A stretch of 63,346 nucleotides of DNA, the filler included, from Octopus bimaculoides (Eukaryota), in the NCBI RefSeq assembly GCF_001194135.2. It is 4 parts of 4 records of this genome, joined end to end, with 100 filler letters (N's around TTAATTAATTAA, not from the genome) between each part and the next. Parts side by side here need not be neighbours in the genome. Positions count along the whole stretch, not along the records: positions 1 to 19,690 come from NC_068990.1; 3 more parts are not named here. One strand, written 5' to 3'. The notes beneath the pieces are model-generated. The model saw only the letters and a program-made list of their open reading frames with translations. It made no database searches and was not told where the DNA came from. Shown in pieces: positions 1 to 19,690 of this stretch; positions within the stretch are counted from its first letter, which is position 1; each line of letters opens with the position of its first letter. Both the position numbers and the translations under genes were made by a program.

Positions 1-79
1 AATGAGGGTGACCTATTTTGCCTAATGGATCCATAGAAACTTTTTTTTTTTAGGGATATGGGTTGTCTTTTACTTTTAA
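1..79 (-). mobile_element. Penelope-like element, continuation of the fragment at 6154-6745 beyond the DNA-transposon insertion
   Basis: Minus strand reads IKSKRQPISLKK. Joining it to 6154+ with a single TA restores GTA CTT AAA ATT ATT AAA AGT AAA AGA CAA CCC = VLKIIKSKRQP, typical of the PLE linker between RT and GIY-YIG. Confidence 0.75.
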
Positions 80-2003
80 TACCATAAAAACCCATGTAAT
101 TTACGCACTTTTTTCTTGCAAAATAAAAATAGACTTTAGCGGGTGCATAAATTACATGAGTAGATCATTTCTGGAATTTTTTGAAACTTTTTTTTATTGA
201 AAAAGACATACAAGACATAAAAATTTGTATCAGAAATTGACTCATTTAATGTCAGAATAGGTTTTTACAGAAAAAATAATGGCTTAAATATGCATAATGA
301 AGTTGACTTTTATTTATGCTGGATGGTATAATGCTTACATTTTCTGAATAAATTTACTACAACTATTAAATGGTTAACTAGTTTTTGAAGTCTAATTTTC
401 AATGCTAGTAAACACAGTCTGGGCCATATTTTACAATACTTGGAGTTTCTACCTATCGCAATCCATTGCACATATTTAATTTCTCCTTCACAGTAAACAA
501 TTCATAAGTTCTGCTCATACTGACAATAATGGTAATGACAAATTTTTAAGTTTGCTTGATATTCTATAAGTGTGAAAGGGATTAAAATTTCGATACTCCC
601 ATATCAAAGGTTCTGACAAGAATAGGCAGATGTCTTGCAAACAACTCGCACATGCAAGTGCTACCAGTCGAGAACTCCGCATACCGGAAGCCAGCAAGTA
701 TATGGGGTCATCAGGAGAGAATGCGCGCCGTTTCGGGGCCTACTTCTCGACAGCATCAATGCCCACCAGCCCTCCCTGATATGATGCCCCACTTGCTAGA
801 TCAACTGGTTATTAAAAACAAAGCTCAATATTTCTTTAGCCATCGCTCATCGTCTCTTTTTAACCAAATCCAGTGGCTAGCCTTCTCCACTGTGAGAACT
901 CCGCATACCGGAAGCCAGCAAGTATATGGNNNNNNNNNNNNNNNNNNNNNNNNNNNNNNNNNNNNNNNNNNNNNNNNNNNNNNNNNNNNNNNNNNNNNNN
1001 NNNNNNNNNNNNNNNNNNNNNNNNNNNNNNNNNNNNNNNNNNNNNNNNNNNNNNNNNNNNNNNNNNNNNNNNNNNNNNNNNNNNNNNNNNNNNNNNNNNN
1101 NNNNNNNNNNNNNNNNNNNNNNNNNNNNNNNNNNNNNNNNNNNNNNNNNNNNNNNNNNNNNNNNNNNNNNNNNNNNNNNNNNNNNNNNNNNNNNNNNNNN
1201 NNNNNNNNNNNNNNNNNNNNNNNNNNNNNNNNNNNNNNNNNNNNNNNNNNNNNNNNNNNNNNNNNNNNNNNNNNNNNNNNNNNNNNNNNNNNNNNNNNNN
1301 NNNNNNNNNNNNNNNNNNNNNNNNNNNNNNNNNNNNNNNNNNNNNNNNNNNNNNNNNNNNNNNNNNNNNNNNNNNNNNNNNNNNNNNNNNNNNNNNNNNN
1401 NNNNNNNNNNNNNNNNNNNNNNNNNNNNNNNNNNNNNNNNNNNNNNNNNNNNNNNNNNNNNNNNNNNNNNNNNNNNNNNNNNNNNNNNNNNNNNNNNNNN
1501 NNNNNNNNNNNNNNNNNNNNNNNNNNNNNNNNNNNNNNNNNNNNNNNNNNNNNNNNNNNNNNNNNNNNNNNNNNNNNNNNNNNNNNNNNNNNNCTACTTT
1601 TCATTTCTCACAGGAAGTTTCTTGTTCTTTTTCTTGAAACGGATCCGCTGACCTGAGAGCACGAAGGTAATAACATCTCAAGATGGTTCTTTCAATGGTT
1701 TTTTCTCAGTGTTGTTGAGATGAATTTGGTTTTTCATAGCATTGAAGATAACCTTCAGGACCAGGTTGTGTCTCTATGTATACCTATTCAATGCTAAGGA
1801 ACAGTTGGAAAGAATATGTTTCAGTGTTCCAACCTTTCTGCATTTGCATATGTCATTCTCTGAGATGTTCCATCTTACGAGATTCGTAGGTGATGGCAAA
1901 ACATCATAGGATGAACGAATCAGAAAACTTAGCCGAGATGTCGTCCACTTCCATATCTCATCTCAACGTATTTTCTTCTCAACAACATGTTCTTCTCATC
2001 TCT

Positions 2004-3701
2004 TCATCTGTCCTTGTTAACTACATCAGATCGAATGAAGCTCTCTGCTTCTCTTGTTTTGACGCTGTTGCTAACAACAGATCTGCATTCACTCCGCATC
2101 ATACTTGCAAACGGTCTGAACTGATTTGCACCAAAACTAAGTCCTCTCCGATGGTTCTGTGTTGCACCCACCATATCTCTGTGTATAAGAGAAGACAAGA
2201 TGTCATCAGTCTCTGCTTCTGCTTTCCACTTCCTGGCTGTTTTCACCTCTGATGGGTTACGCCTGATTTCAGTGTCCTTCGATTCTCTCAGCATCATCAC
2301 CGTCCGTATCTTCCCTAGTTTGTATATTTCGACTATTGACGCTAGTGGTAACTGCAATGAACCTCTTTTACGATAAAGAGCTGAACTGTTCAACATCCAA
2401 GGTAGGCCTAGCCACTTTCTAATGAACACATTACGTTCTTGTTCAATGATCTGAACTTGTGACATTGCTACCTTGTATATTAAAAGTGGCCACAAAAATC
2501 GTGGGAACAAACCGAACTGCAAGCACCAAATTTTATAGTTATCTGGTAACTTCGAGTTATCAATCGCTGATAATCCAGCCTTGGCTTGTTTCATAATTTC
2601 CATTCCACGACTTCTATCTGACAATGTTCCAGTGTATACACGCCCCAACCTCTTGACAGGTTCTTCTTTGACTGTTGGAATGCTTTCTTCAGCTATTCGA
2701 AACTTAAATTCTTTCTGCACTCCATTAACAAATGTCAGACTACGCGACTTTTTTGCTCTAAACTGCATCCTTGACCACCTTACAAGTTCGTCTAGTCTCA
2801 AGAGGGCATTCTGCATGACTTGTTTATCTGTAGCTAGAAGTGTCACGTCATCCATGAAGGCTTTCTTAGGAGATTGTACATGGGCGATTTGTTCAGAAAA
2901 ATCCACCGCTTTCAAAATCATCTCCATGACTAAGATAAACCATGTGGCAGATATTGTACAGCCAGCAGCAATGCCAATCTCCAATCAGTGCCAATCTGTT
3001 GTAAAATCTCCAGCTGTAAACCTCATGTCGAAACTGTCATAGTACATCCTCATTATTTTGATCACTTTGTCTGGAATGTGGAAGTTGTCCATGGCTCTTA
3101 TCAGTAATTTGTGTGGCACTGAGCCATATGCATTAGCTAGGTCAAGCCATACCACATTCAGACTTCTCTTTTTCTGTTTGACATCCTGGATTGCTTTCCA
3201 AATCGAAAAACAGTGTTCAACGCATCCAGGGATCCTGGGGATTCCGGCCTTTTGAACAGACTCATCAACATACCCGTTATTCTGTAAATACGTCACTGTT
3301 CTCCTTGAAAGAATTCCCATAAAGATCTTGCCTTCCACATTCAATAAGGATATCGGCCTAAACTGTTTTAAAGTCTTTGCATTAGCCTCCTTCAGCAGGT
3401 ATATACCTTCTGCCTTACACCAATCCTCTACTACAGTCTGTTTGCGCCACAGCTGTTGGAGTAGGACAAAGAGCTTCTTTCGCAGACGATTGCAATATTT
3501 ATAAACTTTATATGAGATGCCATCACCTCCTGGGGCACTCTTTGCTCTAGCTTTCCTTACAAAATTATTCACCTCTTTCTCCCTGATGTCACCAATTTGG
3601 AATTTGATATCAGGTTCTGAGAGATGAATTAGCCCATGTTGAGGTGGCAGTGGCTGGTTACAATACGGATCGCTGTAGGTTTCTTTGATACGAGCGTCCA
3701 A
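2004..3701 (-). pseudogene. Reverse transcriptase region of the HERO-like element, broken by a stop near 2985-2987
   Basis: ORF-track pieces 2985-3701 and 2004-2984 are consecutive in one frame and together contain the RT motifs, including the FMDD catalytic box. Confidence 0.9.
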
Positions 3702-4393
3702 TTCTTCTTTTGTGCACGATAAAGAATCACTCTTCGGTTCAGTGAACAGCTTCTTAGTAAACCCGTACAGGTCCTTCAGAAAGTGCCCCTGAGTTGTTTT
3801 ACTCTCCTTTTGACGCTCATATCAGCGGATATGTCGTTGCACATAACGACATTTCCTTTTCAAATCATTATACAGCAGCACGAGGCCAGGTTTTTCATCT
3901 TCTGCAGCACGTTTCCATCGCTTTCTTAGGCTGGTCTTTTCCTTCCTCAACTGTTTCATTTTCCTGATCCTCCTGTTTGGTCTACACTTTCCTTTCTCTA
4001 ATTGGATATTCTCTTTCATTCCAAACAATTCCTTCCCTGTANNNNNNNNNNTTTCTCTAATTGGATATTCTCTTTCATTCCAAACAATTCCTTCCCTGTA
4101 TCGTAAATTGAGCTTGTTAATTTTCCCAGTTTCTCCACTGTAGAGCCTGTCATTTTATAAAGAGCTCGACATACCTTGTTTCCAAACTCTTTATATTTTC
4201 CTTTCTCATTAGCAGCAGGCTACAAAACCCTTGGTCTCCTCCGAGTACTATCTGATGCACCAGTCTCATGACTTGCAGTTTCCTGATGGGAAGAGGTCTT
4301 TGCTGTAGCATTTATCGATCTGCTGTGGTTTGAGTCTGGGAATGATTTGCCACGTGTTTTATGATTAGATGATCTACACTGCTCTGTCTTCTT

Positions 4394-4579
4394 TTAACAA
4401 GTCTTTCCCTGATGTATCTTCAAGCCTCTCACAGTTGCAAAGGTTCTACAGCACAGCTTGCATCCAAAGTTGTTTGCACTGTGTTCGCTGTTCGAATGAA
4501 TAGCCGTACTCGTGTCCAAGGTGATTTCCATGTCAACTGGGTTTGATTGATTCTCGACTCTCCCCTCTCGGTCAATCAT
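4394..4579 (-). pseudogene. N-terminal zinc-finger segment of the HERO-like ORF
   Basis: MIDREG...CKLCCRTFATVRGLKIHQGKTC (C-x2-C...H-x4-C). First in-frame ATG downstream of the hairpin-rich 5' UTR. Confidence 0.7.
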
Positions 4580-4650
4580 GGGGCTGTCATTCTCATTCGT
4601 AGTTTTTACAATATATTACAAAGGTGAGGATTGTAAGTCCGCAGCCTTCG

Positions 4651-4746
4651 CCAGTCTCTCCTGGTGTCGATAGTCTTTCCTATTGTCCACTCGTCTTTCC
4701 GAGCAGTTCTCTTGTCTTTCCAAGATGCCTAACTGTCTTTCCGGTT
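4651..4746 (-). ncRNA. Array of five stem-loops in the retrotransposon 5' UTR (loop GAAAGA x4, GAGAGA x1)
   Basis: Sense strand: AACCG-GAAAGA-CAGTT, TCTTG-GAAAGA-CAAGA, CTGCTCG-GAAAGA-CGAGTGG, ATAG-GAAAGA-CTAT, CCAG-GAGAGA-CTGG. Period 19-21 nt. Stem sequences differ but pairing is kept. Confidence 0.7.
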
Positions 4747-4774
4747 TGTCAGTGGCTATCTACCACAAGGTCTT

Positions 4775-5639
4775 AGATGTCTTGCAAACAACTTGCACAT
4801 GCAAGTGCTACCAGTCGAGAACTCCGCATACTGGAAGCCAGCGAGTATATGGGGTCATCCGGAAAGAATGCGCGCCGTTTCAGGGCCTACCTCTCGATGG
4901 CATCAATGCCCACCGGCCTCCACCCTCACTGATATGAGGCCCCACTTGCTAGATCAACTGGTTATTAAAAACAAAGCTTAATATTTCTTTAGCCATCACT
5001 CATCATCTCTTTTTAACCAAATCCAGTGGCTAGCCTTCTCCACTGTATTTTGGATATCGGTCATGGTGGTATTTACCTTATGATAAGTTAGGCCTAACGA
5101 TAACAGCAGTCGTCTCACACTGTGTCCTACAAACCCTCTACATCCAGCTTCAATTGGGAAATGTTCCGTTTTCCAGCCTGCGTCTTCACATTTCTCGAGA
5201 AGGTTTACATAACGGTCAATCTTTCGAGCCCGCCCGGCGTCCATATTATTTTCATGAGGATCCGTTAACTCGACTAGATTTACAACTTTCCTTCTTTCAC
5301 ACCACATTAAAATGTCCGGTTTTTCTGTAACTGGGATGGGAAAGAATGCCTGGCACCCACGTAAATCTGCAGTCACTTCCCAAAATTGTCGTTCCACTTT
5401 TCATTTCTCACAGGAAGTTTCTTGTTCTTTTTCTTGAAATGGATCCACTGACCTCAGCGCACGAAGGTAATAAAATCTCTAGATGGTTCTTTCAATGGTT
5501 TTTTTCTCAGTGTTGTTGAGATGAATTTGGTTTTTCATAGCATTGAAGATAACCTTCAGGACCAGGTCGTGTCTCTATGTATACCTATTCAATGCTAAGG
5601 AACAGTTGGAAAGAATATGTTTCAGTGTTCCAACCTTTC
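4775..5639 (-). mobile_element. Second, 5'-truncated HERO-like copy (RLE domain plus 3' UTR), joined head-to-tail to the long copy
   Basis: 5399-5639 duplicates 1609-1838 (about 96% by eye) and 4775-5043 duplicates 628-893. ORF 4996-5397 has PDI...ELTDPHE...RKIDRY...IEAGCRGF...EKASHWIWLKR, a PD-(D/E)xK restriction-like endonuclease. Confidence 0.85.
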
Positions 5640-6153
5640 ATAATCAGTTTGATCAGTCACCTTCCTCTGTCGGTTGAATATAGCGTCATCCAAGCTGATG
5701 TTTATTGGTAATCAAGCTTAATTTGCTATTGCATATTTATCAGCTTTGTTTTTGTTGGTAATTCTTTTCAACAATTTTTCCTGTGATCACATATTTGAGA
5801 AGACATACAACAGTATGCTAAAGATCGGACATAATCTCTTATGGGCAAGAAATGTAAAATAAAATTTATGATAAACAACACGAACACTTTGTAATTTAAT
5901 GGCTTTCAATGTGATATCTGTTAAACAGAATTTTTTTTATTTAATGGAAGTTTAATAGAATCTAATTATAAGTAAGTGAAATTATGCTAAATACAACTAA
6001 ATTGAAGACCTTTTTCTTCTGGCTATATCGGCAATTCTGAAAACTTTTAGGTGCGAATTTTACATGAGTAGAAGCTTTTTTAAAACAAATTTTATCCTGA
6101 AAATCACCTGTTTAAATTACACAGGGGCGCAGATTATATGGGCTTTTATGGTA

Positions 6154-6745
6154 ATTTTAAGTACTTTGAGTGATTTTTTCATTCATAGATCATCCAATAG
6201 GAGAGGTATATTTTGATGGATGATGTTGTATGCTTCCATGTTCCTTGGATTGTGTGTTGATACATAAGACAAAGTTCTAAGTGTGTCACGAGGTTTTCCT
6301 GTTTTTCATAATTCTTGGATGTCTACCATTTTTATGTTCTATTCCGTTTTTGATTAAACTAATTGGGTGTTTTCTTTGTAGTAATATATTTTTAAGTTCT
6401 TGTAGTCACTTGTCCCAGGTTTCAGGATTCAGTCAGGCAAATTCTTCTTGCTAAGTTTGTAAAGTATATTGATTTTAGTATGCTTTGGGTGGCAGGAAGA
6501 GAATAGTAGATATAGTTTTGAGTCTGTTGATTTACAGATGTTGGTTTCAATGTTAGTGTCTCTTTTATGATTAAAATGTCCAGAAAGGCTAGCTGTTTGT
6601 GACTGTATTCCTTTGTAAATTGGATACTGTAGTTAATGTTAATTAAGTTTTTAAATTTCAAGAGTTGATTGAGGTTATGTGACCACAGAATGAAACAATA
6701 GTTTCCAGTTGGTGAGTAAGTATTTTTGAAAGTTGTCAGAGACAC
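6154..6745 (-). mobile_element. Penelope-like element fragment (RT C-terminal/thumb region)
   Basis: IQFTKEYSHKQLAFLDILIIK...NLARRIC and downstream YVSTHNPRNMEAYNIIHQNIPLL match recalled PLE RT motifs (FTxE...LPFLD, LARRI). Confidence 0.8.
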
Positions 6746-7029
6746 ACAGACACAGTGACATGTTTGTCCAATTTTTACTTTGTAACTTTAAACTCTCCTA
6801 AACCTTTTATATATTTGTACCATTGGTAAGCAAAAAAATTGTCAAAACTGCTTTGGTATTTGAATAAATCTATTACAAAATTTTTAAATGACTACACGCT
6901 TTGAAATTCAGGTGCATTTTCAGATGCATACACACACACACACACACATCCACACTTATATTCTGTACTCTGTATTTTGTATTCCAAGTAAATATATGCA
7001 AAATATTCTCTACTCTCATGGAATAATCT

Positions 7030-7450
7030 AAAACACTGGCTATTTGATTTCTAGTCAGTTGCCTGTCATCCATCACCATGTGGTGAACAGAATCACTGTT
7101 TTCCTTGGTGGTGGCGGTTGCAGGATGTCCAAACCTTGGGTCATCTTGAAAACTCTTCCTTCCTCTCCTAAATTCAGCTGCTTACTTTTGCACTGTTGTT
7201 GAAGCTAGAGTGTCATTCCCTAATGTAGCAACCATGTCAGCATGAATGTCAGTGGCTAAACCCATTTTGTGCAGGTACTTGATAACACCACAATTTTTGT
7301 CCATTTTTAAGAGAGGTCTTCTTTGAACAATCAGATGTCACTTTTACCTAGAAAGAAACAATGTAGTTATTAATAAGAAATGTTGAAATCAATGCAGGCA
7401 AAATTTCGCAGCTCTTGCATCATTTCTTTATAGTGATCCTATGAACTTTC
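7030..7450 (-). mobile_element. Mariner transposase 5' fragment
   Basis: Minus strand MDKNCGVIKYLHKMGLATDIHADMVATLG...AAEFRRGRKSFQDDPRFGHPATATT...VHHMVMDDRQLT (mariner HTH region). Homologous to 21770-22200. Confidence 0.8.
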
Positions 7451-8229
7451 ATAGGTGCAGCCATGGTTCTATTTGGATCAATCAGTTGATTGATTGATTG
7501 AAAAAAGTAAATGACTGATATAAATGCTATTGTCTTTGGAGTCAGCACATCATGTGCCAAAACAAATGAAACCAAAAGTAATAATTTCCTTGACTTCTAA
7601 TCCCTTCACATTTTTACTGTTTTATTTTTATTTTAAATGTTCTATTTCAAATTCCCTACTACATATTTTGAATAACTAGGAAAAATAAGCTGCCTTAAAT
7701 AAGCACATCCTATCAAACACAATGGCCGAACAACCATAATGTAGTAGTAATCTAACAAGCAATGTCCTAGATATCGTAAAATTTCACCAAAACATGACCA
7801 CTAGAGGAGGTGGTGAGCTTCAAATTTCAATGCCCTATGTTTATGGTATTTGACCTCAGTAACAGACAACAATAGACTAAGGCTGATGCCTAGAAAAGGC
7901 TGACCTAGTTCCTTGTAGATACAGCAGTGAGACCCAACATTTGAAAGGTGATTTTTACCTACCACCAGCATGGATGTTACTTATGCAACACCAGCAATGA
8001 CCACATTACATCTATGAGTCCCAACGGTTGAAAGGTGTTTTTTATATACCACTGGCCTGGGTAGTAGTTACATAACACCATCATTAGCCATGTTGCCTCT
8101 GGCACAGTTGCTAGTTATGTGACATCAACATCAGTCACATTGCCTTTGTAAAGCCCAACACTTGAAAGGTGCTCTTATGTGGCACTGACACAAGTGCCAG
8201 TAACATGACACTGGCATCAGCCATGACTA

Positions 8230-9545
8230 CGATTTCACTTGGCATGATGCGTCCTCTCAAGCATAGTATATTGCCAAAGGTCTTAGTCACTAGTCATAGC
8301 CTCCTTGAGGCCCAACGTTTGAAGATCATGCTTCACAATCTCATCCCATGTCTTCCTGGGTCTACCTCTTCCATGTGTTCCCTCTGCAGTTAGGGATCAG
8401 GACTTCTTTACACAGTTGTCCTCATCCATACGCATCACATGACAATACTAGCAGAGTTGTCTCTCTTGCACACCACATCTGATGCCTCTTATGCCCAACT
8501 TTTCTTTCAAGATGTACTCTGAAATTGCACATCCAGCGATGCATGCTAACTTCATTTCTTTCAAGCCTATACATGTCCTTGGTAGTCACAACCCATGTTT
8601 CACTGCCGTGTAACATATCTGTTTATACACAGGCATCATACAGTCTGCCTTTCACTCTGAGGCAGAGGTCCTTTGTTGCCAACAGAGGTAGGAGCTCTCT
8701 GTACTTTGTCCAGCCTATTCTTCTTCTCACAGCTACATTCTCAGAGCATCCACCTCCTCTACTGACTTAGTCGCCTAGATAACGGAAACTATCCACTACC
8801 ACTAGCTTACTCACCTGACGTTTGATGGAGTCTATTTTCTGTAAATTTTTAATGTTAATTGTACCTGTGCACCTTCAACACACAAAAACTATTTTTCCTG
8901 TTAACCTTCCTCTAATATTACTGCACTCCTTATGTGTCTATAGCTTGCACTGGGTACATCTTATGGAATTTCTCCCTATACCTTTCCTACAGAGCGAGCA
9001 GGACTGTCTACCTGAAGGGATTTGCAATTTGTCTACTTTCCTACTTACTGAAACTTTGGTTTTCATTGGGATAACTCTAAGGCCCTTCGATTTTAGACCT
9101 TGCTTCCACAACTGAAATTTCTTCTTTAGTTCTGGTAGTGATTTAGCTATAAGAACAAGGTCATCAGCATAAGGAGCTCCCAGGGGCAGCCTGTCTTAAA
9201 TTTTTCTGGTATTGCCTGGAGGACTATGATGAACAAGAGGGGGCTGAGGACTGATCCTTCATGAACCCTTGCTTCTACCCTGAATTCATCACTATACTCA
9301 CCTTCACCTTACTGGCAAACCCTGTATGTGGCTTGTACGGTTTTCACCAACCACTCATCTATCACTAGTTTCTGTATTGACCACCAGATAAGGGAGTGGG
9401 AAACCCTGTCAAAGCTTTCTCCATGTCAACAAAGGCCAAGTACAGAAGTTTGTCTTTGGCTGGGTATTTCTCCTACAGCATCAGTGGTGCTTCTCCTTGG
9501 TACACATGCTTCTGGGATTAGTCCCACTGCCTGGCACCTTTTACT
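8230..9545 (-). mobile_element. RTE-clade LINE, 3' portion with RT remnants
   Basis: VHEGSVLSPLLFIIVLQAI...CPWELL, VDSFRYLGD, RELLPLL...RVKGRLYDACV, MLHGSETW, RLERNE. Many stops and frameshifts. Confidence 0.85.
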
Positions 9546-9792
9546 ATAGCTTCGAGCCAATCAAAGCCTTCTGAGTGGATTTGGTAGGTGAAGACTGTAA
9601 GAAGCCCATTGTGTTATATATATATATATATATATATATATNNNNNNNNNNNNNNNNNNNNNNNNNNTGGTGCATAATTATTGCGACTTTTCTTCAATAA
9701 ATTTTATTCAACAAAAAATTTAAACAAAATGCCAGGTAGAAATTGAGTAGATGGTGAATATTCTCTGGAATAATCATATAAAGATGTTTTTG

Positions 9793-10175
9793 TTATCTCC
9801 GCCAAGGAAGAAGGTTATGTTTTCATCGGTGTTGGTTTGTCTGTCTGTCCTTCTGTGTGCAAAATAACTCAAAAAGTTGTGAACGGTATTTTTTGAAACT
9901 TGTAGGAAGAGTTGGTAATGACACAAGGAACAGATGATGAAATTTTGGTACTGATCCAGGAATGTTTATGGATTCTTGAAGGAATTTTCATTTGTTATAT
10001 TTACTTTACATGAAGTATTACAATGTTATGTTCTTTGATTATCTCCCTTGAAAACACGTTCATTGTTTCCACGTAACCTATGGTGGTGTTGCTGTTTCCA
10101 AAGTTTATTTTCGTTTCTCTATTAGTAATTTTACTCGTGTATCTATCTTAAAATGAGCTGCTTGGCAGAGGTCTG
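9793..10175 (+). mobile_element. Helentron-associated (HINE/DINE-1-like) non-autonomous element
   Basis: 5' TTATCTCCGCCAAGG..GGTTATGTTTTC...TTTGTCTGTCTGT and 3' subterminal inverted copy CTTGGCAGAGGTCTG. A second 5' stub lies at about 11341-11380. Confidence 0.55.
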
Positions 10176-10194
10176 TGGAGGATGACATGACAAG

Positions 10195-10560
10195 CCAATT
10201 ACTCAAAAAGCTCAGACTTTGCTCCCTCCACCGCTGCTGTGAGCTCTATATCATCTGTATGATGTGGAAAATATTCCATCAGCATTGCCCATCCTTAAAA
10301 TTCATCCGAGGCTTGTCCCCCGTGCAATCCGTCCACTACAGAAATGTTCATGTTGTATCACAAACACTATGACAGAAATATTTCACCTCAATTAGCCCTG
10401 TTCACTTCAACATTGTGCCAGACACACATAAAGGAGAAAAGTGACTTCACAGCATTCAAACGATCCCTAGATGACTACCCCCAACAAATACCAGATAAAC
10501 CACCCACACCCAGATATGTCTCTGAAAACAATAACCCTCTGCTTGAATGGGCTACAGTTC
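10195..10560 (+). mobile_element. CR1-group LINE, 3' ORF2 remnant
   Basis: LKKLRLCSLHRCCELYIICMMWKIF resembles the LxLYSLQRRRERYxIIxxWK motif; later FKRSLDDY.QQIPDKPPTP.YVSENNNPLLEW. Confidence 0.65.
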
Positions 10561-10574
10561 CCCAGAACTGACTG

Positions 10575-10795
10575 TGTATCTCTTCCAGGTAGTGCTATTA
10601 AATTAGACATGGCCTGAGTCAACTTCAGCTGAAAGTTATCTAAGTAATCTAATTTATGCTGTAACCTTTTAATCAAAGCATGACAACGTGGGTAGAAGCT
10701 GATATCTTAACATTTCTGATGGTCTTAAGTATAAAAAAAATTCTTAAAGATTTATATAGAACTACATTCAGAATATGTCTATAAGCTATTATGTT
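10575..10795 (+). repeat. Interspersed repeat, present in inverted orientation at about 37145-37365
   Basis: CCAGGTAGTGCTATTAAATTAGACATGG...GAACTACATTCAGAATATGTCTATAAGCT matches the reverse complement of 37145-37365. Confidence 0.75.
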
Positions 10796-11429
10796 TAGAC
10801 CTGGTTTCTATCCTCAAACTGTTCTGGTTTGTAGATGCAATTTTTTTTTTTAATAAAACACTCCGAAATTAGAAAAATCAAAAATCTACAACAATCTCGG
10901 TCCCAGGAGTATCGAATAATGGATTTTCAACTGTGTAAAGAAACTGATTGTGGTGACTGTAGTTTTGATGGTGATTGTGGTGAAAGCAGAGACAGTGTTG
11001 ATGATGACGATAATCGAGATAAGTATGGGTGGAGGATAAAATAGTATCAGTGGTTATAATGGCAACAGGAGTGGTGTGATGTGTGTTGATGGTGGTAATA
11101 GTGGTGTTGATGATAGTGTTAGTTGTGTGGTGGAGGTATTGTAGTGGTTATACTGGTTGTGGTGGTGAAAGTGACTGTCAAGGTAACTGTCATGATAACG
11201 TTGATGGCAGTGTATGTGGTTGAAGTGAAAGCAATGACAGTACTGCTGCTGATGTTGGTGGTTGTGAACTGCTTCAGATGATTCCTGTTTTTAAAGGGTT
11301 TTTGTTTTTTAAAATCATATGGCTGTGTTATCCCCCCCCCCCCGCCAAGGAGGTTATGATTTTGCCGGCATTGGTTTGGGAAATTAGGCGATTTTCAGCA
11401 TGCATGTATATGGGTGGAAATGAGCTCTA

Positions 11430-11760
11430 ACTGTAGAGGGAACCTGTGGAACAGGTAGACCAAGAAGATATGGAATGAGGTAATGAAGCATAATCTTCAA
11501 ATGTTGGGCCTCATGGAGGCAATGACTGGTGACCAAAACCTTTGGCGATATACAGTGCTTGAGAAGACCGGCTAAGCCAAGTGAAATCATAGTTGTGACC
11601 GATGCCAGTGTTGCGTATCTGGCACCTGTGCTGGTGGCACTTCAAATGCACTCTTCAAACTTTGCACCTCACACAGGCAGTGACAAGTGACTGAAATGTT
11701 TGGCAATATACTCTGCTTGAGAAAACCTGTCAAGCCAAATGAGATTGTAGGCATGGCTGA
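11430..11760 (+). mobile_element. RTE LINE 3'-end fragments
   Basis: VEGTCGTGRPR...KHNLQMLGLMEAMTGDQNLWRYTVLEKT; same family as 8230-8420 and 32760-32870. Confidence 0.75.
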
Positions 11761-12899
11761 TGCTGGTGTTTTGTCATTGGTATGTATAAAGCACTCACTA
11801 CTCTCTTGGCCACTGGAATTGAGCCTAAATCGCTTGAAACACAAGCCAAAGACCGCACCAAGTGGTAGTGTTCCATTACCATCGGAACCAAAAACTTCAA
11901 ACCCACCATAAGAGAAAAGGAAGAAATCAAATGCTAGGAGAGAAAGGCTCAGTAGAAAACAAAAGAGCATGAAGAGAACTAAAGAATAAAGTAGGATTTA
12001 CTGTATTAAGAGAGTGTAAAAGAAAAATAATCAGTTAAACCCATTTATGTCATGCTTCCAAGTTTTAGTATGACATATTGTTTCTTTTGCTTCTTTGAAT
12101 GTGTGGATGCTGGACACTGGTTAGTGGGTAAAGGAATGGCTTATGGTGATGTGTTTGAAGATGTGATGGCTTTGCATATGTAGTAGAATACTATGAATGT
12201 GTTTATAAAAGTAAGCAGTGAGGAAGGGCTAGTTTTACCAATAGTGCAGCAGAAGTTTTGTCTCATATGATATAGTGACTTAGTAAAAATAGTCAACAGA
12301 GACACTCACTACATTCAAATATTTACTTGTTCTCATTGCTATATGTTGTCTCAAAAAATAACCATAATTTTTTGTATCAATACTTTAATCAGCCATCAAT
12401 TTAAAACAATATTATTACAGCATGCACTTACTGAAAATCTACAGGTGTCAGAGTAGTTCTTTTATATTCTTGATCCATCAATTTCTTGCTCATGTAATTA
12501 CTCCATTCTAGAGCATCTTTTTTTGCACTAGCTGTAGTTGATTATTATAATGCTATACCAATATTTCCTGGTTGATTATGGACCAATGAGGGTGTTTCTC
12601 TGTATCAGTTATAGGCAACCTGTGGCTCACAGAACTTTTGGAATTGCAGGCCTAATGAAAAATTGCCTTCAGTTTTGTTGTTGTATAGCCTTCCCGATGA
12701 TGACCCATGCCTCATGCAGACCACTTCTCAAAAAAAAAAAGGTTACCGATACTTGCTCTACATTGTTACCCAACTTGCTAGAAATATCTCTTGGATCTCA
12801 CCCTCTCATTTTAAAAATGTCTTGTTAGATAAAATGGTTCTGAATTTCCTACACGTGAGAAAAAGACAAGCTGGTCACAAGTAGAATGCCTTTGATTAT

Positions 12900-13540
12900 A
12901 GTCAGAAATGACTTGTGTTTAAAGAACATTAACAACCTGATTGATTATCTTGTTTCCTACTACATTGGGTATTTTCAGCCTTTCAGCTACAATTGTACTA
13001 ATTGCTTTTCATACCTTCTTATCCTTACTGGCCCTTTTGCCTGTATAACTACTTAAATAGTAGTTATACATATAGTAATCCATATTTATATGATGCACTC
13101 TCCCCATTTAGCAACCTCTCATCATAGCATTTCCATGCCTCTTTCTTTTTGATTGTAATGAACGTGCGTGTATATCTATTATTACATTGACACTTCACAC
13201 CAACACCATCCCAATTCACACTGATTATACTACTTTGCAATTCAGAACATTCATACATCTAATCTTCAAATTACAGAACTTAGGCTGACTACTTACTTTC
13301 AACCACTCTCCTTCCTAAGTATATCCAATATTTAGCTATCTGATGTTGCAGCTTACTTTCCCTCACTCTTTCCAGGTCCATCTCTTAACTTTTATGGCTT
13401 TGTCATTGAGGTTTTGCAAGAGGCTGTCATGAAAATTGTCCTTTGGATCATCTGTAACTTCTGATGGTGTATATGCAAAGATAACTATTGCTGTTGTATT
13501 GCCTATGACTACTTCAGTTACTCTATACATTTCTCGGCCT
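12900..13540 (-). mobile_element. Decayed APE endonuclease region of an RTE-like LINE
   Basis: Minus strand IVIFAYTPSEVTDDPKDNFHDSLL resembles the IxxYAP...KDxFY motif. Heavily mutated. Confidence 0.5.
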
Positions 13541-14494
13541 ATTATATGTTATCATTCATTTGAACATTGTTACCTGTCTAGGAAAAAATGTACCTATTAG
13601 TTCTGGGTTCAATTCCACTGTGCATCAACTGGTGATCTGATGCCCCGTGAGGGAATGTGAAAGATGGAAACTGACTGAAGACTGTTGTTTCTTTGCATCT
13701 GTGTGTCTGTGTGTGTGTACAACAGATGATTTTGTTGATACTTCCTGCCAACAAATTATCCACTTGTTCTGTGCTTTTGAATTCTTCTGGAACTAAAATA
13801 TCCTTACTTATGAAACAGGTAAATGTTTGTAAGAAAAGCATCAAACCACAATATTCTTGCTTCAAGTATAATCCCATCTAACCCCAGTTAGCATGGAAAA
13901 ATAGACATTGAACAAATGAATAAATGGATTTTGTTTGTGAAGACAAAGGCTGAGGCTTCTCTCAATCTTAGCTGTATAAATCTAATTGTCTTACAGTATA
14001 AATCTAATTGTCATCACTCAAGTACTTCTACAATCTCTGTATATCTACCTTCCATTATGCTAATATTTATGGTGACATTCTTAAAGTTCTTTGAGAGATT
14101 TTGCTTGGGTAGTGAGTAGGATACTTATGTCTGCACATGAAAAGAAGAGAGTTTCTGGGATTGTCTACAGTTGTAATATAATATTTCTGTTATATGATAT
14201 TACTAAAAGGTCTTGTCTTCTGAGTTAAAAAAGAAATAATTTCTTAATATTAAGTTTTGAATATTGCTTTTCATTCAGAAATTTCATGAGCATATCTATT
14301 TGCTTTCATATTTTTAAGCTGTTGGTGAAATTCTGTGGTGTTGTTTTTGAATTTGAAAAATTTAACTGGAGTTGTGAGTCACTTTATGTTCCTGATGGTT
14401 TGGTTGATGGACGATTAATTCCTGTAAAGTAAGTTTAATTTATGAACTTTTATGTTTGATTTTCTCCTATTTTTCATAAATATCTAATATAGAT

Positions 14495-14635
14495 ACAATC
14501 GCAGCATGGAAGGTGTTTATAAGCCATTTAATTTGTCAAAATATTTTCGCTGCTTTGAGACCGCAACCTGTTCACTGACAAAATTCCGTGCCTTGTTTTT
14601 AAATGACTTATAAACACCTTCCACGCTGCAATTGT
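14495..14635. mobile_element. Small foldback/MITE-like element with ~36-bp inverted arms
   Basis: ACAATCGCAGCATGGAAGGTGTTTATAAGCCATTTA versus reverse complement of 14600-14635, ACAATTGCAGCGTGGAAGGTGTTTATAAGTCATTTA (3 mismatches). Confidence 0.7.
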
Positions 14636-15951
14636 TTTTGTTTCAGCACACTATCTCAAATAAGGTCACTTGCTATGCAAGTACATCTCCATAAAAATAA
14701 TATAGATAATTTGTCATATATAAATTGTGCTGATGAAATATTGATTGATTATACCTCTCTATCTGCCAGTCATGTATTGGATTGAAAGCTTCTCATTAAA
14801 TGATGCCATTGCTGCATGCACTGTCAGGGATCTTTCTGACACATACACTCTGTCTATTTTGGTGTATTCCAAGATTCACTTATGTTCCCCATTTTTCCAT
14901 CTCTTCTCCATTAAGCTTGCTATCACTTCTAGCATTGCTAGAGGTGATAGCAAGCAGGTTGTTAATGACATCAGAGGAAAATATCTGCCAATGACTTCTG
15001 TGCATATTAACTAATGATTTGGGATGGAATTCCTAATCATGTTCTGCACTATCAAACATTATCAATTGATTCTTGATTCACATAATTCTCAAGCTACCTA
15101 GAGTAATAAGGCGGTTTAAGAGGAAACAAAAAAAAAAGTCAGGGTTGTGAATTATGTGTGTGAAGGATCATATTTCCAATGCACCATCTAAAGTATCAAA
15201 ACTAATTACTTCTCCCATAAAAAATCAATAAAATTTGTATGAGGTTGATATGAGGTAAAACCTTTGAAAGTAGTACCCCAATGTGACTGTCCAATGACTG
15301 AAATTAGAGAAAGAGTAAAATATACAGCTCTTGATTGAATTTAAATTCAAGTACATATTAAAATTTATGAAATATTGAAATTTTCTCTGGATGTGTATAT
15401 TCAGTTTTGTGTCAGTTACATAATCTTCTCTACGGTGAAATACTGGAGTGTATCCTCAACTTAGACCTTTAAACCAGAGGCCTTGATAAGGAATATGATA
15501 AAAAAGCTTCCTGTGGGGGGGGGGGGGGTGTTTCACTTCAGCTGCATACAGTGTTGAATGAAGGCATGACTCTTAAAAATAGAAATTCATAGAAATAAAA
15601 TCCTTAAATAAATACGACTTCATTTTCATTCTATTACTGGAAAATGTCAGAACAGAGAGTAGAAGTTGTTTTATTTTGTTTTCTTCATTTTGCTACTTCT
15701 GGTTTAATGATTGTTAAATGATGCACTATGAATTGTGAAGTGTTGCTAGATGATGTACTGTCTGACTCACATATATGTAACTATTTTATATAGGTGTACA
15801 GCACCTGAATTACTACCAATTGACCTCCGAGCAAAGCTTATTGTCTGCATGATTCATTTGAAGCATCATAAAATTGTTGAGGTTTGTAAATAAAATTATT
15901 GAGGTTTCTAAAACATGTAATTGTGTGTGTATATATGTATGTGTATGTATA

Positions 15952-16040
<89 letters not shown>

Positions 16041-16051
16041 TCATATAGATA

Positions 16052-16214
16052 GGTGCAGGAGTGGCTGTGTGGTAAGTAGTTTGCTTACCAACACATGGTT
16101 CTTGGTTCAGTCCCACTGCGTGGCACCTTCAGCAAGTGTCTTCTACTATAGCCTCGGTCCAACAAAAGCCTTGCGAGTGGATTTGATAGACAGAAACTGA
16201 AAGAAGCCTATCAT
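16052..16214 (+). mobile_element. tRNA-derived SINE (family A), 5' half
   Basis: A-box-like TGGCTGTGTGG and B-box-like GGTTCAGTCCC; at least nine copies in the window. Confidence 0.85.
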
Positions 16215-16223
16215 ATATATATA

Positions 16224-16430
16224 TCGGAGTGGGTAAGGGACATGGGAGTTATAAGTATGTCTTAGCCAGCGGCCGGTTCATTCAAGATTGTTGCCTACAG
16301 AACTCGGGAGCATAATTTTTTGATAATCAACCCCGTACCATTGCACATTATTGGAGCATCTAAATTCCTTAGCAGCATGATTGGCGCGTCAACTTTCAGG
16401 TGCAGTTTGTGAGCTGGTAGTTTTGCAGGT
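16224..16430 (-). mobile_element. Helitron Pif1-like helicase remnant
   Basis: PAHKLHLKVDAPIMLLRNLDAPIMCNGTGLIIKKL..RVL*ATILNEPAAG*DILI matches the recalled PPHxLxLKVGxPIMLLRNL...LCNGTRL motif; two in-frame stops. Confidence 0.85.
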
Positions 16431-17351
16431 CCCCCCTTTTGTCAGATTTGTCATGGGCCGGCCGATCTATCTCAGATACATGGGAAGCTGGATTNNNNNN
16501 NNNNNNNNNNNNNNNNNNNNNNNNNNNNNNNNNNNNNNNNNNNNNNNNNNNNNNNNNNNNNNNNNNNNNNNNNNNNNNNNNNNNNNNNNNNNNNNNNNNN
16601 NNNNNNNNNNNNNNNNNNNNNNNNNNNNNNNNNNNNNNNNNNNNNNNNNNNNNNNNNNNNNNNNNNNNNNNNNNNNNNNNNNNNNNNNNNNNNNNNNNNN
16701 NNNNNNNNNNNNNNNNNNNNNNNNNNNNNNNNNNNNNNNNNNNNNNNNNNNNNNNNNNNNNNNNNNNNNNNNNNNNNNNNNNNNNNNNNNNNNNNNNNNN
16801 NNNNNNNNNNNNNNNNNNNNNNNNNNNNNNNNNNNNNNNNNNNNNNNNNNNNNNNNNNNNNNNNNNNNNNNNNNNNNNNNNNNNNNNNNNNNNNNNNNNN
16901 NNNNNNNNNNNNNNNNNNNNNNNNNNNNNNNNNNNNNNNNNNNNNNNNNNNNNNNNNNNNNNNNNNNNNNNNNNNNNNNNNNNNNNNNNNNNNNNNNNNN
17001 NNNNNNNNNNNNNNNNNNNNNNNNNNNNNNNNNNNNNNNNNNNNNNNNNNNNNNNNNNNNNNNNNNNNNNNNNNNNNNNNNNNNNNNNNNNNNNNNNNNN
17101 NNNNNNNNNNNNNNNNNNNNNNNNNNNNNNNNNNNNNNNNNNNNNNNNNNNNNNNNNNNNNNNNNNNNNNNNNNNNNNNNNNNNNNNNNNNNNNNNNNNN
17201 NNNNNNNNNNNNNNNNNNNNNNNNNNNNNNNNNNNNNNNNNNNNNNNNNNNNNNNNNNNNNNNNNNNNNNNNNNNNNNNNNNNNNNNNNNNNNNNNNNNN
17301 NNNNNNNNNNNNNNNNNNNNNNNNNNNTATATATATATATTTATAATATAT

Positions 17352-17735
17352 ATCATCATCATCATCATCGTTGATTAATGTCCGCTTTCCATGCTAGCAT
17401 GGGTTGGACGATTTGACGGAGGACTGGCAAGCCAGCAGGCTGCACCAGGCTCCAATCTGAGTTTCTACAGCTGGATGCCCTTCTTAACACCAACTTCCAA
17501 GAGTGTAGTGGGTGCTTTTATGTGCCACCATCATGAGGGCCAGTCACACGGTACTGGCAACGGCCACGCTCAAAAAGGTGCCACCTGCATGGGAGCCAGT
17601 CCAGCGGCACTGGCAACAACCTCGCTCGAATGATTTTCTAATGTGCTACCAACACGAGTGCTAGAAGGCGACGCTGGTAATGATTACGCTCAAATGGTGC
17701 TATTTACGGGCCACTAGCACGGAAGCCAGACAGCT
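17352..17735 (-). mobile_element. RTE 3'-UTR/tail-derived repeat ending in (GAT)n
   Basis: (CAT)n...GTCCGCTTTCCATGCTAGCATGGGTTGGACG...CTACAGCTGGATGCCC; more than ten copies in the window. Confidence 0.75.
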
Positions 17736-17739
17736 GCTC

Positions 17740-17995
17740 TGGCAATAAACACACTCTTTAATTCTAGTGAGACAATCTTCAAATTTGCCTATGTGGTTTG
17801 GAGCATCCAGTAGGCAATATGTATTGCATATGACTATATTATGTTGTCTTATGTATACAATTAGGGTGTCACATACCGAATTTGAGTATGACAGTAAGAC
17901 CTGGGGTGTGAGGTCGTCACGGATGTATACAGCAACTCCACCATGGCTCCTTTCCCTTCTGTCTGTTCGCAGTATGACATATTTTGGTACGTGTA
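17740..17995 (-). mobile_element. CR1-type APE endonuclease fragment
   Basis: YVILRTDRRERSHGGVAVYIRDDL matches the RxDR...GGGVAxY APE motif; runs into an N gap. Confidence 0.75.
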
Positions 17996-18933
17996 NNNNN
18001 NNNNNNNNNNNNNNNNNNNNNNNNNNNNNNNNNNNNNNNNNNNNNNNNNNNNNNNNNNNNNNNNNNNNNNNNNNNNNNNNNNNNNNNNNNNNNNNNNNNN
18101 NNNNNNNNNNNNNNNNNNNNNNNNNNNNNNNNNNNNNNNNNNNNNNNNNNNNNNNNNNNNNNNNNNNNNNNNNNNNNNNNNNNNNNNNNNNNNNNNNNNN
18201 NNNNNNNNNNNNNNNNNNNNNNNNNNNNNNNNNNNNNNNNNNNNNNNNNNNNNNNNNNNNNNNNNNNNNNNNNNNNNNNNNNNNNNNNNNNNNNNNNNNN
18301 NNNNNNNNNNNNNNNNNNNNNNNNNNNNNNNNNNNNNNNNNNNNNNNNNNNNNNNNNNNNNNNNNNNNNNNNNNNNNNNNNNNNNNNNNNNNNNNNNNNN
18401 NNNNNNNNNNNNNNNNNNNNNNNNNNNNNNNNNNNNNNNNNNNNNNNNNNNNNNNNNNNNNNNNNNNNNNNNNNNNNNNNNNNNNNNNNNNNNNNNNNNN
18501 NNNNNNNNNNNNNNNNNNNNNNNNNNNNNNNNNNNNNNNNNNNNNNNNNNNNNNNNNNNNNNNNNNNNNNNNNNNNNNNNNNNNNNNNNNNNNNNNNNNN
18601 NNNNNNNNNNNNNNNNNNNNNNNNNNNNNNNNNNNNNNNNNNNNNNNNNNNNNNNNNNNNNNNNNNNNNNNNNNNNNNNNNNNNNNNNNNNNNNNNNNNN
18701 NNNNNNNNNNNNNNNNNNNNNNNNNNNNNNNNNNNNNNNNNNNNNNNNNNNNNNNNNNNNNNNNNNNNNNNNNNNNNNNNNNNNNNNNNNNNNNNNNNNN
18801 NNNNNNNNNNNNNNNNNNNNNNNNNNNNNNNNNNNNNNNNNNNNNNNNNNNNNNNNNNNNNNNNNNNNNNNNNNNNNNNNNNNNNNNNNNNNNNNNNNNN
18901 NNNNNNNNNNNNNNNNNNNNNNNNNNNNNNNNN

Positions 18934-19690
18934 NGTTTTTTAAGCCCAGAAGGGGAGTAGAGGATAGAGAGGAAGTGAAAGATAGCGGGAGGTAGAAAAG
19001 AAGAAACACAGAGGTGGGGAATAGAGAAAGAGAGAGGGAGATATGAAGGAAAGAGAGAGTGAGATATTAAGGAAAAAGAGAGGGTGATATGAGGAAGAGA
19101 GGGAGTGTGGGGTGTTAGAGACAGAAGGAGGTAGAGGAAGGGGAGAGAAAGAGAGACAGAGGGAGGGAGAGGATGGGAGGAGAAAGAGAGACAGAGGGAG
19201 GGAGAGGATGGGAAGAGAGAGAGAAAGAAACAAGAAAGGATGAAGGATGTGAGAGGAAGGGAGACACGGACTGAGAAGAGGAGGAAAATGAAAAGTGTAT
19301 GAGGGAGAGGGTGAGGTGACAGAAGGAGAAGAAGGCGTTGTGAGATACAATGGAAAGGGAAGAGAACTGAGAAAAGTGGAAGATATGAAAGCGAAGGGGA
19401 CAGATGAGAAAAAGGAATGAGATATGGAAAGAAGAGGAAGATATGAAAGCGAGGGAGGGAGATGAGAAAAAGAGTAAGATATGGAAGACAGAGAGGGAGA
19501 GAGATAGGTGTAAAGAGATAAAGGGAGAGAGAGAGAGAGGAAGCAGTACTTATGAAAAAGAGTGGGAGCAGGTAACGAAGATGTGTAGGAAAATGAAAAA
19601 TTCGTAATTCTAAATGGGATTTGTAATTCAAAGAGTTGTAGAGATAAAGCGAAAAGAAACGAAACGATAGTGAAAAGAAGGGGGGGGGGG
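18934..19690. repeat. GA-rich polypurine low-complexity tract
   Basis: Dominated by G/A on the plus strand; generates spurious L/S/P-rich ORFs. Confidence 0.9.

Follow-up and report, generated by a model that had tools for sequence, protein, structure and literature searches.

The window analyzed here is a stretch of 63,346 nucleotides (nt) from Octopus bimaculoides (assembly GCF_001194135.2), made of four parts separated by filler letters, the first of which (positions 1 to 19,690) derives from NC_068990.1. Two copies of a retrotransposon without long terminal repeats (non-LTR), of the restriction-like endonuclease (RLE) type, are joined head-to-tail on the minus strand. The full-length but decayed downstream copy, called copy B, carries in its 5' leader an array of five short hairpins (H1 to H5), which differ in the stems and share a nearly invariant loop. 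The features of the leader are as follows.

4651..4746, minus strand: array H1-H5, hairpins with a G-C-closed hexaloop GA(A/G)AGA, defined by base-by-base reading, fold, motif count and covariance model
4731..4750, minus strand: unit 1, GACA (4750-4747) and H1, AACCG-GAAAGA-CAGTT (4746-4731), stem of 5 bp with one C.A mismatch
4710..4729, minus strand: unit 2, degenerate GGCA (4729-4726) and H2, TCTTG-GAAAGA-CAAGA (4725-4710), stem of 5 bp
4687..4709, minus strand: unit 3, degenerate GAAC (4709-4706) and H3, CTGCTCG-GAAAGA-CGAGTGG (4706-4687), stem of 7 bp with two G.U pairs
4670..4687, minus strand: unit 4, GACA (4687-4684) and H4, ATAG-GAAAGA-CTAT (4683-4670), stem of 4 bp
4651..4668, minus strand: unit 5, GACA (4668-4665) and H5, CCAG-GAGAGA-CTGG (4664-4651), stem of 4 bp
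4752..4766, minus strand: H0, 5'-terminal hairpin GTGGT-AGATA-GCCAC, outside the unit type of the array, kept in the relatives L003 and L002
4619..4650, minus strand: H6, longer two-part hairpin downstream of the array (AAGG..GGA-CTTACAA-TCC..CCTT)

Minus-strand copies of the motif GGA(A/G)AGAC are located at 4742-4735, 4721-4714, 4700-4693, 4680-4673 and 4661-4654, with a spacing of 21, 21, 20 and 19 nt. Six copies were counted in the window versus 0.95 expected, and none of 200 shuffles had as many as six. The sixth (GGAAAGAC, 4408-4401, minus strand) resides outside the array, lacks complementary arms, and provides codons for QGKTC in a conserved zinc-finger motif. Loops are GAAAGA in four units and GAGAGA in one, and the closing pair is G-C in all five. 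A preliminary description of this DNA had reported five repeats at 19–21 nt spacing in five different stems, including the mismatch of H1 and the two G.U pairs of H3, and both the base-by-base reading and the shuffle count bear this out. The comparison with dinucleotide shuffles proposed there gave a concordant result: the segment 4640-4760 (minus strand) folds in RNAfold at -32.8 kcal/mol versus -20.5 +/- 2.9 for the shuffles (z = -4.28, none of 200 as good), with H2-H5 recovered exactly and H1 partly. The array at these coordinates is far from chance. A coding role of the array was rejected because the 19–21 nt period shifts the motif from frame to frame, and the array of relatives is interrupted by stops.

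Relatives of the element, retrieved by exact-protein look-ups, were provided by metagenomes of plankton, genome contigs of invertebrates, and amphioxus. The array was found in 7 of the 8 relatives with a readable 5' region (L002, L003, L005, L006, L334/L335, L338, L589), which exhibit 42–70% identity in the reverse transcriptase (RT). No array was seen in the eighth, a sea urchin element (L588), the 5' end of which is unclear. L001 (Octopus) and L004 are 5'-truncated and have no array. Arrays in retroelements, by decreasing RT identity, are the following.

L003, RT 70%: five units, GAC kept in all five
L005, RT 65%: five units
L002 (Tara plankton), RT 62%: four units
L006, RT 55%: array present
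L334/L335, RT 53%: array present
L338 (3-Mb genomic contig), RT 51%: inserted U in the loops
L337, RT 45%: partial array, ended by the contig start
L589 (Branchiostoma belcheri), RT 42%: three GAACAG loops and one GAGAGA loop
L089 (metagenome), RT 26%: six units, found through the pattern itself

Pairing was measured in 37 distinct units from 10 retroelement loci. The four loop-adjacent positions are paired in 85.9% of cases, versus 56.6 +/- 2.6 upon shuffling of the partners, and pairing falls to 20–49% if the register is shifted. The covariation score is 0.779 versus 0.204 (none of 500 shuffles). H0, H3, H4, H5 and H6 were predicted by RNAalifold on four leaders (window, L003, L005, L002), with compensatory double changes at 12 of 33 pairs. 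The orthologue of H1 in L003, L005 and L002 is TCCTG/CAGG(A/G), with two compensatory pairs; the orthologue of H4 in L003 and L005 is ATGG/CCAT, in which A-U is replaced by G-C; several pairs of H6 are changed on both sides across the four leaders. G.U pairs outnumber A.C oppositions (18 versus 8 in retroelement units, 46 versus 0 at core positions of the units found in other RNAs), hence the fold belongs to the sense RNA.

Changes which preserve complementarity, both between paralogous and between orthologous units, support the view, advanced in the preliminary description, that the hairpins are under selection for structure, and the other copies keep pairing along with the motif. The accompanying argument, that plain duplication would have copied the stems, stands in part. 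The stems of the window array do differ, but neighbouring units with identical stems, attributable to recent duplication, are found in L006, L334, L089 and L589, which shows that new units are generated by duplication, and that their later divergence is bound to maintain pairing. The array has been conserved since before the octopus-amphioxus split. This evidence bears on the hypothesis of a feature acting at the DNA level, as transcription factor sites of an internal promoter (GGAAAGAC boxes), or of a decaying tandem repeat devoid of function. The 5' untranslated regions (UTRs) of non-LTR elements often contain internal promoters built of repeats, Tandem Repeats Finder detects in the array a weak 19-nt period (2.5 copies), and a spacing of 20–21 bp corresponds to two helical turns. 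Yet the arms differ and stay complementary through double substitutions, G.U is tolerated and A.C is not, which marks one RNA strand, the unit is also found in RNA viruses with no DNA stage, and conservation reaches back beyond the split of the two animal lineages. A DNA-level or neutral origin is therefore exceedingly improbable.

The same unit marks RNAs of bacteria, phages and viruses. Unrelated coding tandem repeats made up most of the matches when sequence collections were scanned with a three-loop pattern, and the metagenome collection added a single retroelement (L089). Dozens of further loci were identified, in each of which GGARAGAC is placed between different complementary arms, always on the transcribed strand. 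Transfer-messenger RNA (tmRNA), ribosomal RNA (rRNA) and transfer RNA (tRNA) loci are included.

tmRNA arrays: L237 474-529, L241, L249, L257, L282, L007, L010, L027, L033, L125, L198
rRNA-leader arrays: L225 5836-5902, L219, L016, L230, L254, L275
tRNA-leader arrays, upstream of tRNA genes: L114, L084
Phage arrays: L188 6028-6149 and related phage contigs
Other array loci: L026 245-309; L247 3092-3157; L212 786-856; L155 4248-4321

In the tmRNA of Acidimicrobiia, as in one IMG/VR contig, three units reside where the Rfam model expects the pseudoknots pk2-pk4. Arrays in rRNA leaders precede 16S rRNA by about 330–380 nt in Rhodobacteraceae, and a 23S rRNA by about 60 nt. In gut-phage contigs the array separates a Prp-like peptidase gene from the gene which precedes the major head gene; the ATG of this preceding gene is 13 nt downstream of the array, and a Shine-Dalgarno sequence is included in the interval. 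The array of a Chloroflexota mRNA leader is 24 nt before the start codon. A dicistrovirus contig, which features helicase, 3C protease, RNA-dependent RNA polymerase (RdRP), the internal ribosome entry site of the intergenic region (IGR IRES) and capsid, hosts an array ending about 30 nt before the AUG of the first open reading frame (ORF1). In a tombus-like RdRP contig the array is close to the 5' end, about 390 nt from the ORF. Arrays outside retroelements are made by 3–9 units, and stems covary within each group, bacterial arrays included.

The association of loop and array is specific to the sequence of the loop. Hairpin arrays were found at 23 of 87 GGARAGAC loci in IMG/VR, versus 2 of 80, 0 of 120 and 0 of 49 loci for three permuted loops of the same composition, and the two positives of the control loops are plain repeats. 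A covariance model built from the Acidimicrobiia tmRNA arrays only has a sole match in the window, at 4709-4646 (42 bits, E = 4e-9), and also finds all the related retroelement arrays, along with the viral, phage and rRNA-leader ones. Rfam searches of the other array loci matched the surrounding tmRNA, rRNA, tRNA and IGR IRES only, and no family corresponds to the arrays themselves. Literature searches on the 8-mer combined with hairpin, IRES or tmRNA, on the GAAAGA hexaloop, and on hairpin replacements in tmRNA retrieved nothing on arrays. Neither did searches on the 5' UTRs of HERO elements, in line with the preliminary description, which had assigned the element to a HERO-like type, and according to which such an array is not known to have been described for HERO.

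Two other likenesses were discarded. GGAAAGAC is identical to residues 2056-2063 of 23S rRNA (the Erm/TLR13 site); the pairing register differs, and the identity was taken as coincidence because an 8-mer is not unlikely to occur in a 2.9-kb RNA. An array of the type found in small RNAs which bind CsrA/RsmE was excluded, as the loop G-GARAGA-C is not preceded by an unpaired A, and arrays occur in animals, eukaryotic viruses, and taxa with no CsrA. No consistent complement to the loops was found in a Ruegeria 16S rRNA or in the 5' part of a 23S rRNA.

The preliminary description missed a conserved GAC(R) directly 5' of the stems. GAC begins 7–8 nt 5' of GGARAGAC in 32 of 38 retroelement units (4.3 expected), in all 8 viral units, and in 89 of 115 units of bacteria and phages (15.1 expected). 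GACR was not included in any search pattern. In contrast, the G-C closing pair, found in 37 of 37 units of the family, was partly imposed by the search pattern. GAC usually adjoins a stem with all positions paired, and the next base is a purine, as seen in 22 of the 23 retroelement units in which it abuts the paired stem. GAAAGA and GAGAGA account for 24 of 58 retroelement hairpins and for 92 of 144 bacterial and phage hairpins counted in or beside the arrays, the remainder being mostly flanking hairpins external to the arrays. Rare loop variants are GAAUAGA, GAGUAGA and GAACAG.

The pair of loop variants GGAGAGAC and GGAAAGAC could be traced in the literature to the small hairpin (sHP) of the flavivirus 3' UTR, which measures 14 nt (PMC3187688). 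Dengue virus (DENV) types 2 and 4 and Zika virus (ZIKV) feature tGACg-CUGG-GAAAGA-CCAG, while DENV1 and DENV3 carry GAGAGA (PMC11432202). According to a recent preprint, based on selective acylation of the 2'-hydroxyl read out through primer extension (SHAPE), mutagenesis and replicons, the sHP and the GACR immediately upstream are joined in a tertiary interlock (bioRxiv 10.64898/2026.09.23.753880). The GACR-sHP interlock is defined by an invariant GAC plus R, a stem of 4–5 bp, a G-C closing pair, and a hexaloop varying only at L3; the upstream strand docks on the loop, in which G5 is crucial, a sheared G.A pair is proposed for positions 1 and 6, and positions 5–6 are protected by the GACR contact (bioRxiv 10.64898/2026.09.23.753880). 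The motif, which may be one of the smallest RNA units to display a non-nested tertiary contact, is restricted by the authors to mosquito-borne-related flaviviruses, and bacteria, tmRNA, retrotransposons and tandem copies are not mentioned (bioRxiv 10.64898/2026.09.23.753880). The array units carry every sequence signature of this interlock. The unit is of a known kind, very recently described, whereas the tandem form, the retrotransposon clade, and the spread over bacteria, phages and other viruses appear unreported.

These data bear on the function assigned to the array in the preliminary description, which was that of a multivalent protein-binding or translation-initiation platform. As a multivalent site for the element's own protein, the array would be involved in ribonucleoprotein assembly or in the control of integration, as the 5' RNA of R2. 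The structured 5' RNA of R2 binds the R2 protein (PDB 8iby and 8ibz, 'R2 with 5'ORF'), the array is a conserved feature of the entire clade and adjoins the start of the ORF, and repeated identical loops suit multivalent binding. On the other side, units with GACR reside in tmRNA, rRNA leaders, phage mRNA, and dicistro-, tombus-like and flaviviruses, all lacking such a protein, the copy number ranges from 2 to 9, and the flavivirus loop is fixed by an RNA-RNA contact. We moved away from an element-specific protein because the same unit arrays mark RNAs which share no protein with the element, and because loop, closing pair and GACR fit the RNA-only tertiary motif of flaviviruses. The earlier functional reading was probably too element-specific; a site for the element's own protein is rather improbable, and is the option least consistent with the cross-domain distribution.

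The array is carried by an element organized as follows.

628..4774, minus strand: copy B, full-length but decayed RLE non-LTR retrotransposon, owner of the array
4394-4579, minus strand: copy B, C2H2-like zinc finger
2004-3701, minus strand: copy B, RT, matched by Pfam RVT_1 on both ORF pieces (2985-3701 and 2004-2984)
1774-1899, minus strand: copy B, CCHC motif
4775..5639, minus strand: copy A, 3' part (865 bp) of a second, 5'-truncated copy, placed head-to-tail against the 5' end of copy B
4996-5397, minus strand: copy A, RLE domain (AlphaFold2 model, pLDDT 87)
4775-4995, minus strand: copy A, 3' UTR
4576..4596, minus strand: upstream ORF (uORF) of six codons, ATG 4596-4594, TGA 4578-4576, overlapping the ATG of the zinc-finger frame (4579-4577)
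4855..4881, minus strand: copy A 3'-UTR boxes GAAAC (4881-4877), pyrimidine box TCTTTCC (4867-4861) and GGATGA (4860-4855)
708-720, minus strand: copy B 3'-UTR boxes TCTCTCC (720-714) and CTGATGA (714-708)

Copy B is decayed by stops, frameshifts, N gaps (930-1593 and 4042-4051), and a 49-bp assembly duplication. The latter consists of a segment exactly repeated at 3993-4041 and 4052-4100, on either side of the 10-N gap 4042-4051; the repeat was most likely produced by the assembly, and introduces a spurious frameshift in the ORF. Copy A is matched with 628-1838 of copy B. The AlphaFold2 model of 4996-5397 (minus strand) has R2 proteins (9nl2, 9dou, 8iby, 8gh6) as top Foldseek matches in PDB (probability 1.00, TMq 0.60–0.71), and the family alignment retains C..C..H..C and PD...ELT...K, that is CCHC and a PD-(D/E)xK restriction-like endonuclease. 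Searches by sequence only (Pfam, PDB phmmer) gave no match to the endonuclease domain. In an intact relative, the RT region is structurally matched by L1 ORF2p and R2. An N-terminal C2H2 pattern CKLCCRTFATVRGLKIHQGKTC is present, which Pfam zf-C2H2_4 scores 17.6 bits, under the cut-off of 27. RT, CCHC and endonuclease together identify an RLE element of the R2 group, as had been proposed from the sequence at the outset. The nearest named protein relatives are uncharacterised, and belong to Octopus (90%), Aplysia (62%) and Branchiostoma (42–44%).

Based on the junction between the copies, copy B has its 5' end at about 4774, and the first array hairpin follows after 29 nt; the segment thus belongs to the element and is just inside its 5' end, where the preliminary description had located it. 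A copy 93% identical was located in GCA_001194135.2. All three Octopus copies share the terminal ...TTGCAAGACAT(C). The downstream 3' flanks of copy B and L001 differ, hence site-specific insertion was rejected, and no target specificity is evident. An Rfam 15 E-value scan of the whole window revealed no ribozyme, R2 or other family at the locus, with the limit that folds like that of the hepatitis delta virus (HDV) ribozyme can escape sequence-based models.

The region upstream of the array corresponds to the 3' part of another copy, or to a whole one, in the window, L002, L005, L006, L334, L338 and L589, while L337 and L089 end at or near the contig start. The head-to-tail arrangement looks like a family trait, since wherever upstream sequence exists the 3' UTR of another copy comes before the array, and implies read-through transcription. 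It would fit tandem amplification, or an RT which jumps end-to-end between templates.

Downstream of the array, the first ATG (4596-4594) is found at 55 nt and opens the uORF, whereas the ATG of the reading frame, at 4579, is at 72 nt; the distance of about 70 nt previously given for the first ATG thus holds for the latter only. The ATG at the start region is not conserved in L002, L005 and L006, and the intact frame of L006 has no in-frame ATG upstream of the zinc finger. A conserved nucleotide box, (A/G)CAGCCCC..G..CGAGAG(G/C)GGG, lies across the putative start downstream of H6 (window 4571-4600; L003 786-880; L589 6040-6075), and the ATG inside it is changed to AGG, AAG or GGG in L002, L005 and L589. 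A sub-lineage (L006 102-118, L334 3455-3470, L089 139-151) features, downstream of the array and just before the start codon, a mini-hairpin GUGC-GAAA-G(C/U)GCA with a GNRA tetraloop of the GCGAAAGC type.

The position of the arrays evokes a translation platform, in which loops would recruit a universal component, such as the small ribosomal subunit or EF-Tu/eEF1A, to form a putative cap- and AUG-independent module, IRES-like or of the 'standby' type. Retroelement arrays end 7–72 nt before the putative start, and the dicistrovirus, phage and Chloroflexota arrays similarly precede start codons at about 30, 13 and 24 nt. The L006 frame lacks an in-frame AUG before the zinc finger, the AUG is not conserved in L002 and L005, and the tmRNA array stands at the place of the pseudoknot ring. 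The R2 protein is made by an unknown non-canonical mechanism, for which no methionine codon is needed (PMC13580325). Many arrays are however untranslated, as those in rRNA and tRNA leaders, in tmRNA downstream of the tag frame, and at the 3' end of flaviviruses, and the tombus-like array is about 390 nt away from the ORF. No complementarity to conserved 16S rRNA was found, and the platform is putative. The occurrence of arrays in untranslated RNAs argues against translation as the common denominator, and we regard a platform of this kind as unlikely.

The 3' UTR boxes GAAAC, pyrimidine box and (C)TGATGA were also found at L003 556-600, L005 3330-3360, L334 3260-3300 and L589 5710-5750. A hammerhead ribozyme made by the GAAAC...CUGAUGA boxes was rejected, as order and spacing fit no hammerhead topology, and Rfam gave no match. 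The sequence TCTTTCC in copy A is the exact complement of GGAAAGA, and a link of the pyrimidine box to the array is only a possibility. In such a case loops would pair by kissing interactions with the TCT(T/C)TCC box, mediating communication between 5' and 3' regions or defining junctions, or else with the anticodon loop of tRNA-Glu (CUUUC / CUCUC). Copy B, L001, L003 and L005 carry TCTCTCC, so that either form is an exact complement of GGAAAGA or GGAGAGA, just 5' of TGATGA, and the variable loop position would presumably match the wobble base of two tRNA-Glu isoacceptors. Kissing is nonetheless very improbable: the box is absent or altered in the distant array-bearing relatives L338, L589 and L337, a 7-mer match within about 220 nt is only mildly unlikely, loop positions 5–6 are occupied in flaviviruses by the GACR contact and are not free, and bacterial arrays are not accompanied by such a box.

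Elsewhere in the window, runs of N are found at 930-1593, 9642-9667, 16495-17327 and 17996-18934, for a total of about 2.5 kb. Dispersed repeats at 8138-8399 and 11421-11682 (inverted, 77% identical), and at 9502-9627 and 16091-16224 (71%), are probably fragments of unrelated transposable elements. GA-rich minisatellites with periods of 23, 35 and 58 nt lie at 19026-19539 within long spurious ORFs. Sub-threshold Rfam matches to mir-1277, mir-297 and mir-466 in the (TATA)n tract 15930-16056 were discarded as low-complexity artefacts.

Taken together, the data lead us to view the array, with some reserve, as probably a chain of self-folding interlock mini-domains, in which contacts intrinsic to the RNA fix the loop, and which would serve the element as a structural leader. 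Each retrotransposon unit would fold alone into a locked mini-domain, the invariant loop and linker being fixed by RNA-RNA contacts inside the unit rather than by a protein of the element. The leader would become a string of compact beads, hardly any of it being left as free single strand, and the differing stems would prevent mis-register between repeats. The element RNA probably arises from transcription which reads through head-to-tail copies, and probably lacks a cap. A structural leader might shield its 5' region, keep the 3' UTR of the upstream copy and the start region of the element itself from mispairing, and give H6 and the start region a defined setting, suited to the non-canonical way in which R2-type elements are typically translated.

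Several points weigh against the view of a chain of interlock mini-domains. Membership of the units in the interlock class rests on sequence signatures, and the paper which defines the interlock is a preprint. In two of the five window units GAC is degenerate (GGCA, GAAC), but copy B is a pseudogene, which the degenerate GAC at H2 and H3 fits, and L003 has GAC in all five. An intrinsic fold alone does not explain arrays of 2–9 units, and a binding partner, if multimeric or repeated, would select for multivalency as well. Several arrays are located 7–72 nt before a start codon, a position also fitting a translational role. The role of the array in the retrotransposon is one that we only infer.

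It is conceivable, and proposed here as a tentative extension, that the interlock is a universal modular RNA block, on the scale of GNRA tetraloops and k-turns, reused mostly in tandem across bacteria, phages, positive-strand RNA viruses and retrotransposons, the array being possibly read by a shared cell component (small ribosomal subunit, EF-Tu/eEF1A). If so, the interlock would be a general element of RNA architecture, useful for annotation, Rfam and RNA design, and many natural sequence contexts would be available in which to study the flaviviral sHP. RLE retrotransposons would gain a defined, mutable 5' RNA module for testing the stabilisation and translation of uncapped, AUG-less RNAs, and a concrete handle would be provided on why the family is always found as head-to-tail copies. 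Should a shared component read the array, the AUG-independent translation of R2-type retrotransposons would become directly testable.

The array may be compared with structured RNAs of other systems. The unit has the same anatomy as the flavivirus sHP (dengue, Zika, yellow fever, West Nile), which features GAC and a purine, a free stem of 4–5 bp, G-C closing and G-A-R-A-G-A, as exemplified by the L089 unit GACAGCUGGGAAAGACCAG and DENV2 UGACGCUGGGAAAGACCAG. The flaviviral motif is present in single copy at the 3' end, with GACR within the 3' cyclization sequence, and tunes genome cyclization. In contrast, the octopus array is made by five tandem copies in a 5' leader and has no known long-range partner. 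The same motif would thus reside in different genetic elements; no common descent is implied, and the tertiary contact has been probed in flaviviruses only.

The structured 5' RNA of R2 (HDV-like ribozyme, '5'ORF RNA') is likewise located at the 5' side of an RLE non-LTR element, co-transcribed, and has no obligatory AUG. R2 5' RNAs are however ribozyme or pseudoknot folds rather than hairpin arrays, and share no sequence similarity with the octopus array. In tmRNA the array units occupy the place of pk2-pk4, as compact structural beads between functional domains; the pseudoknots are of the H-type and vary in sequence, whereas array units have an invariant loop and linker. Differing stems with one conserved loop are also found in CsrB/RsmZ (GGA loops), in the MAT2A 3'-UTR hairpins recognized by METTL16, in lambda boxB, and in viral packaging-signal hairpins. 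The array loop includes GGA, and a GNRA-like fold with bases extruded would be possible for it, as in the GNRA-like loops of lambda boxB. The array differs from these protein-binding hairpins as it features no A(N)GGA, no UACAGAGAA and no adjacent boxA, and because its units are preceded by a conserved GAC linker, which is lacking in those systems.

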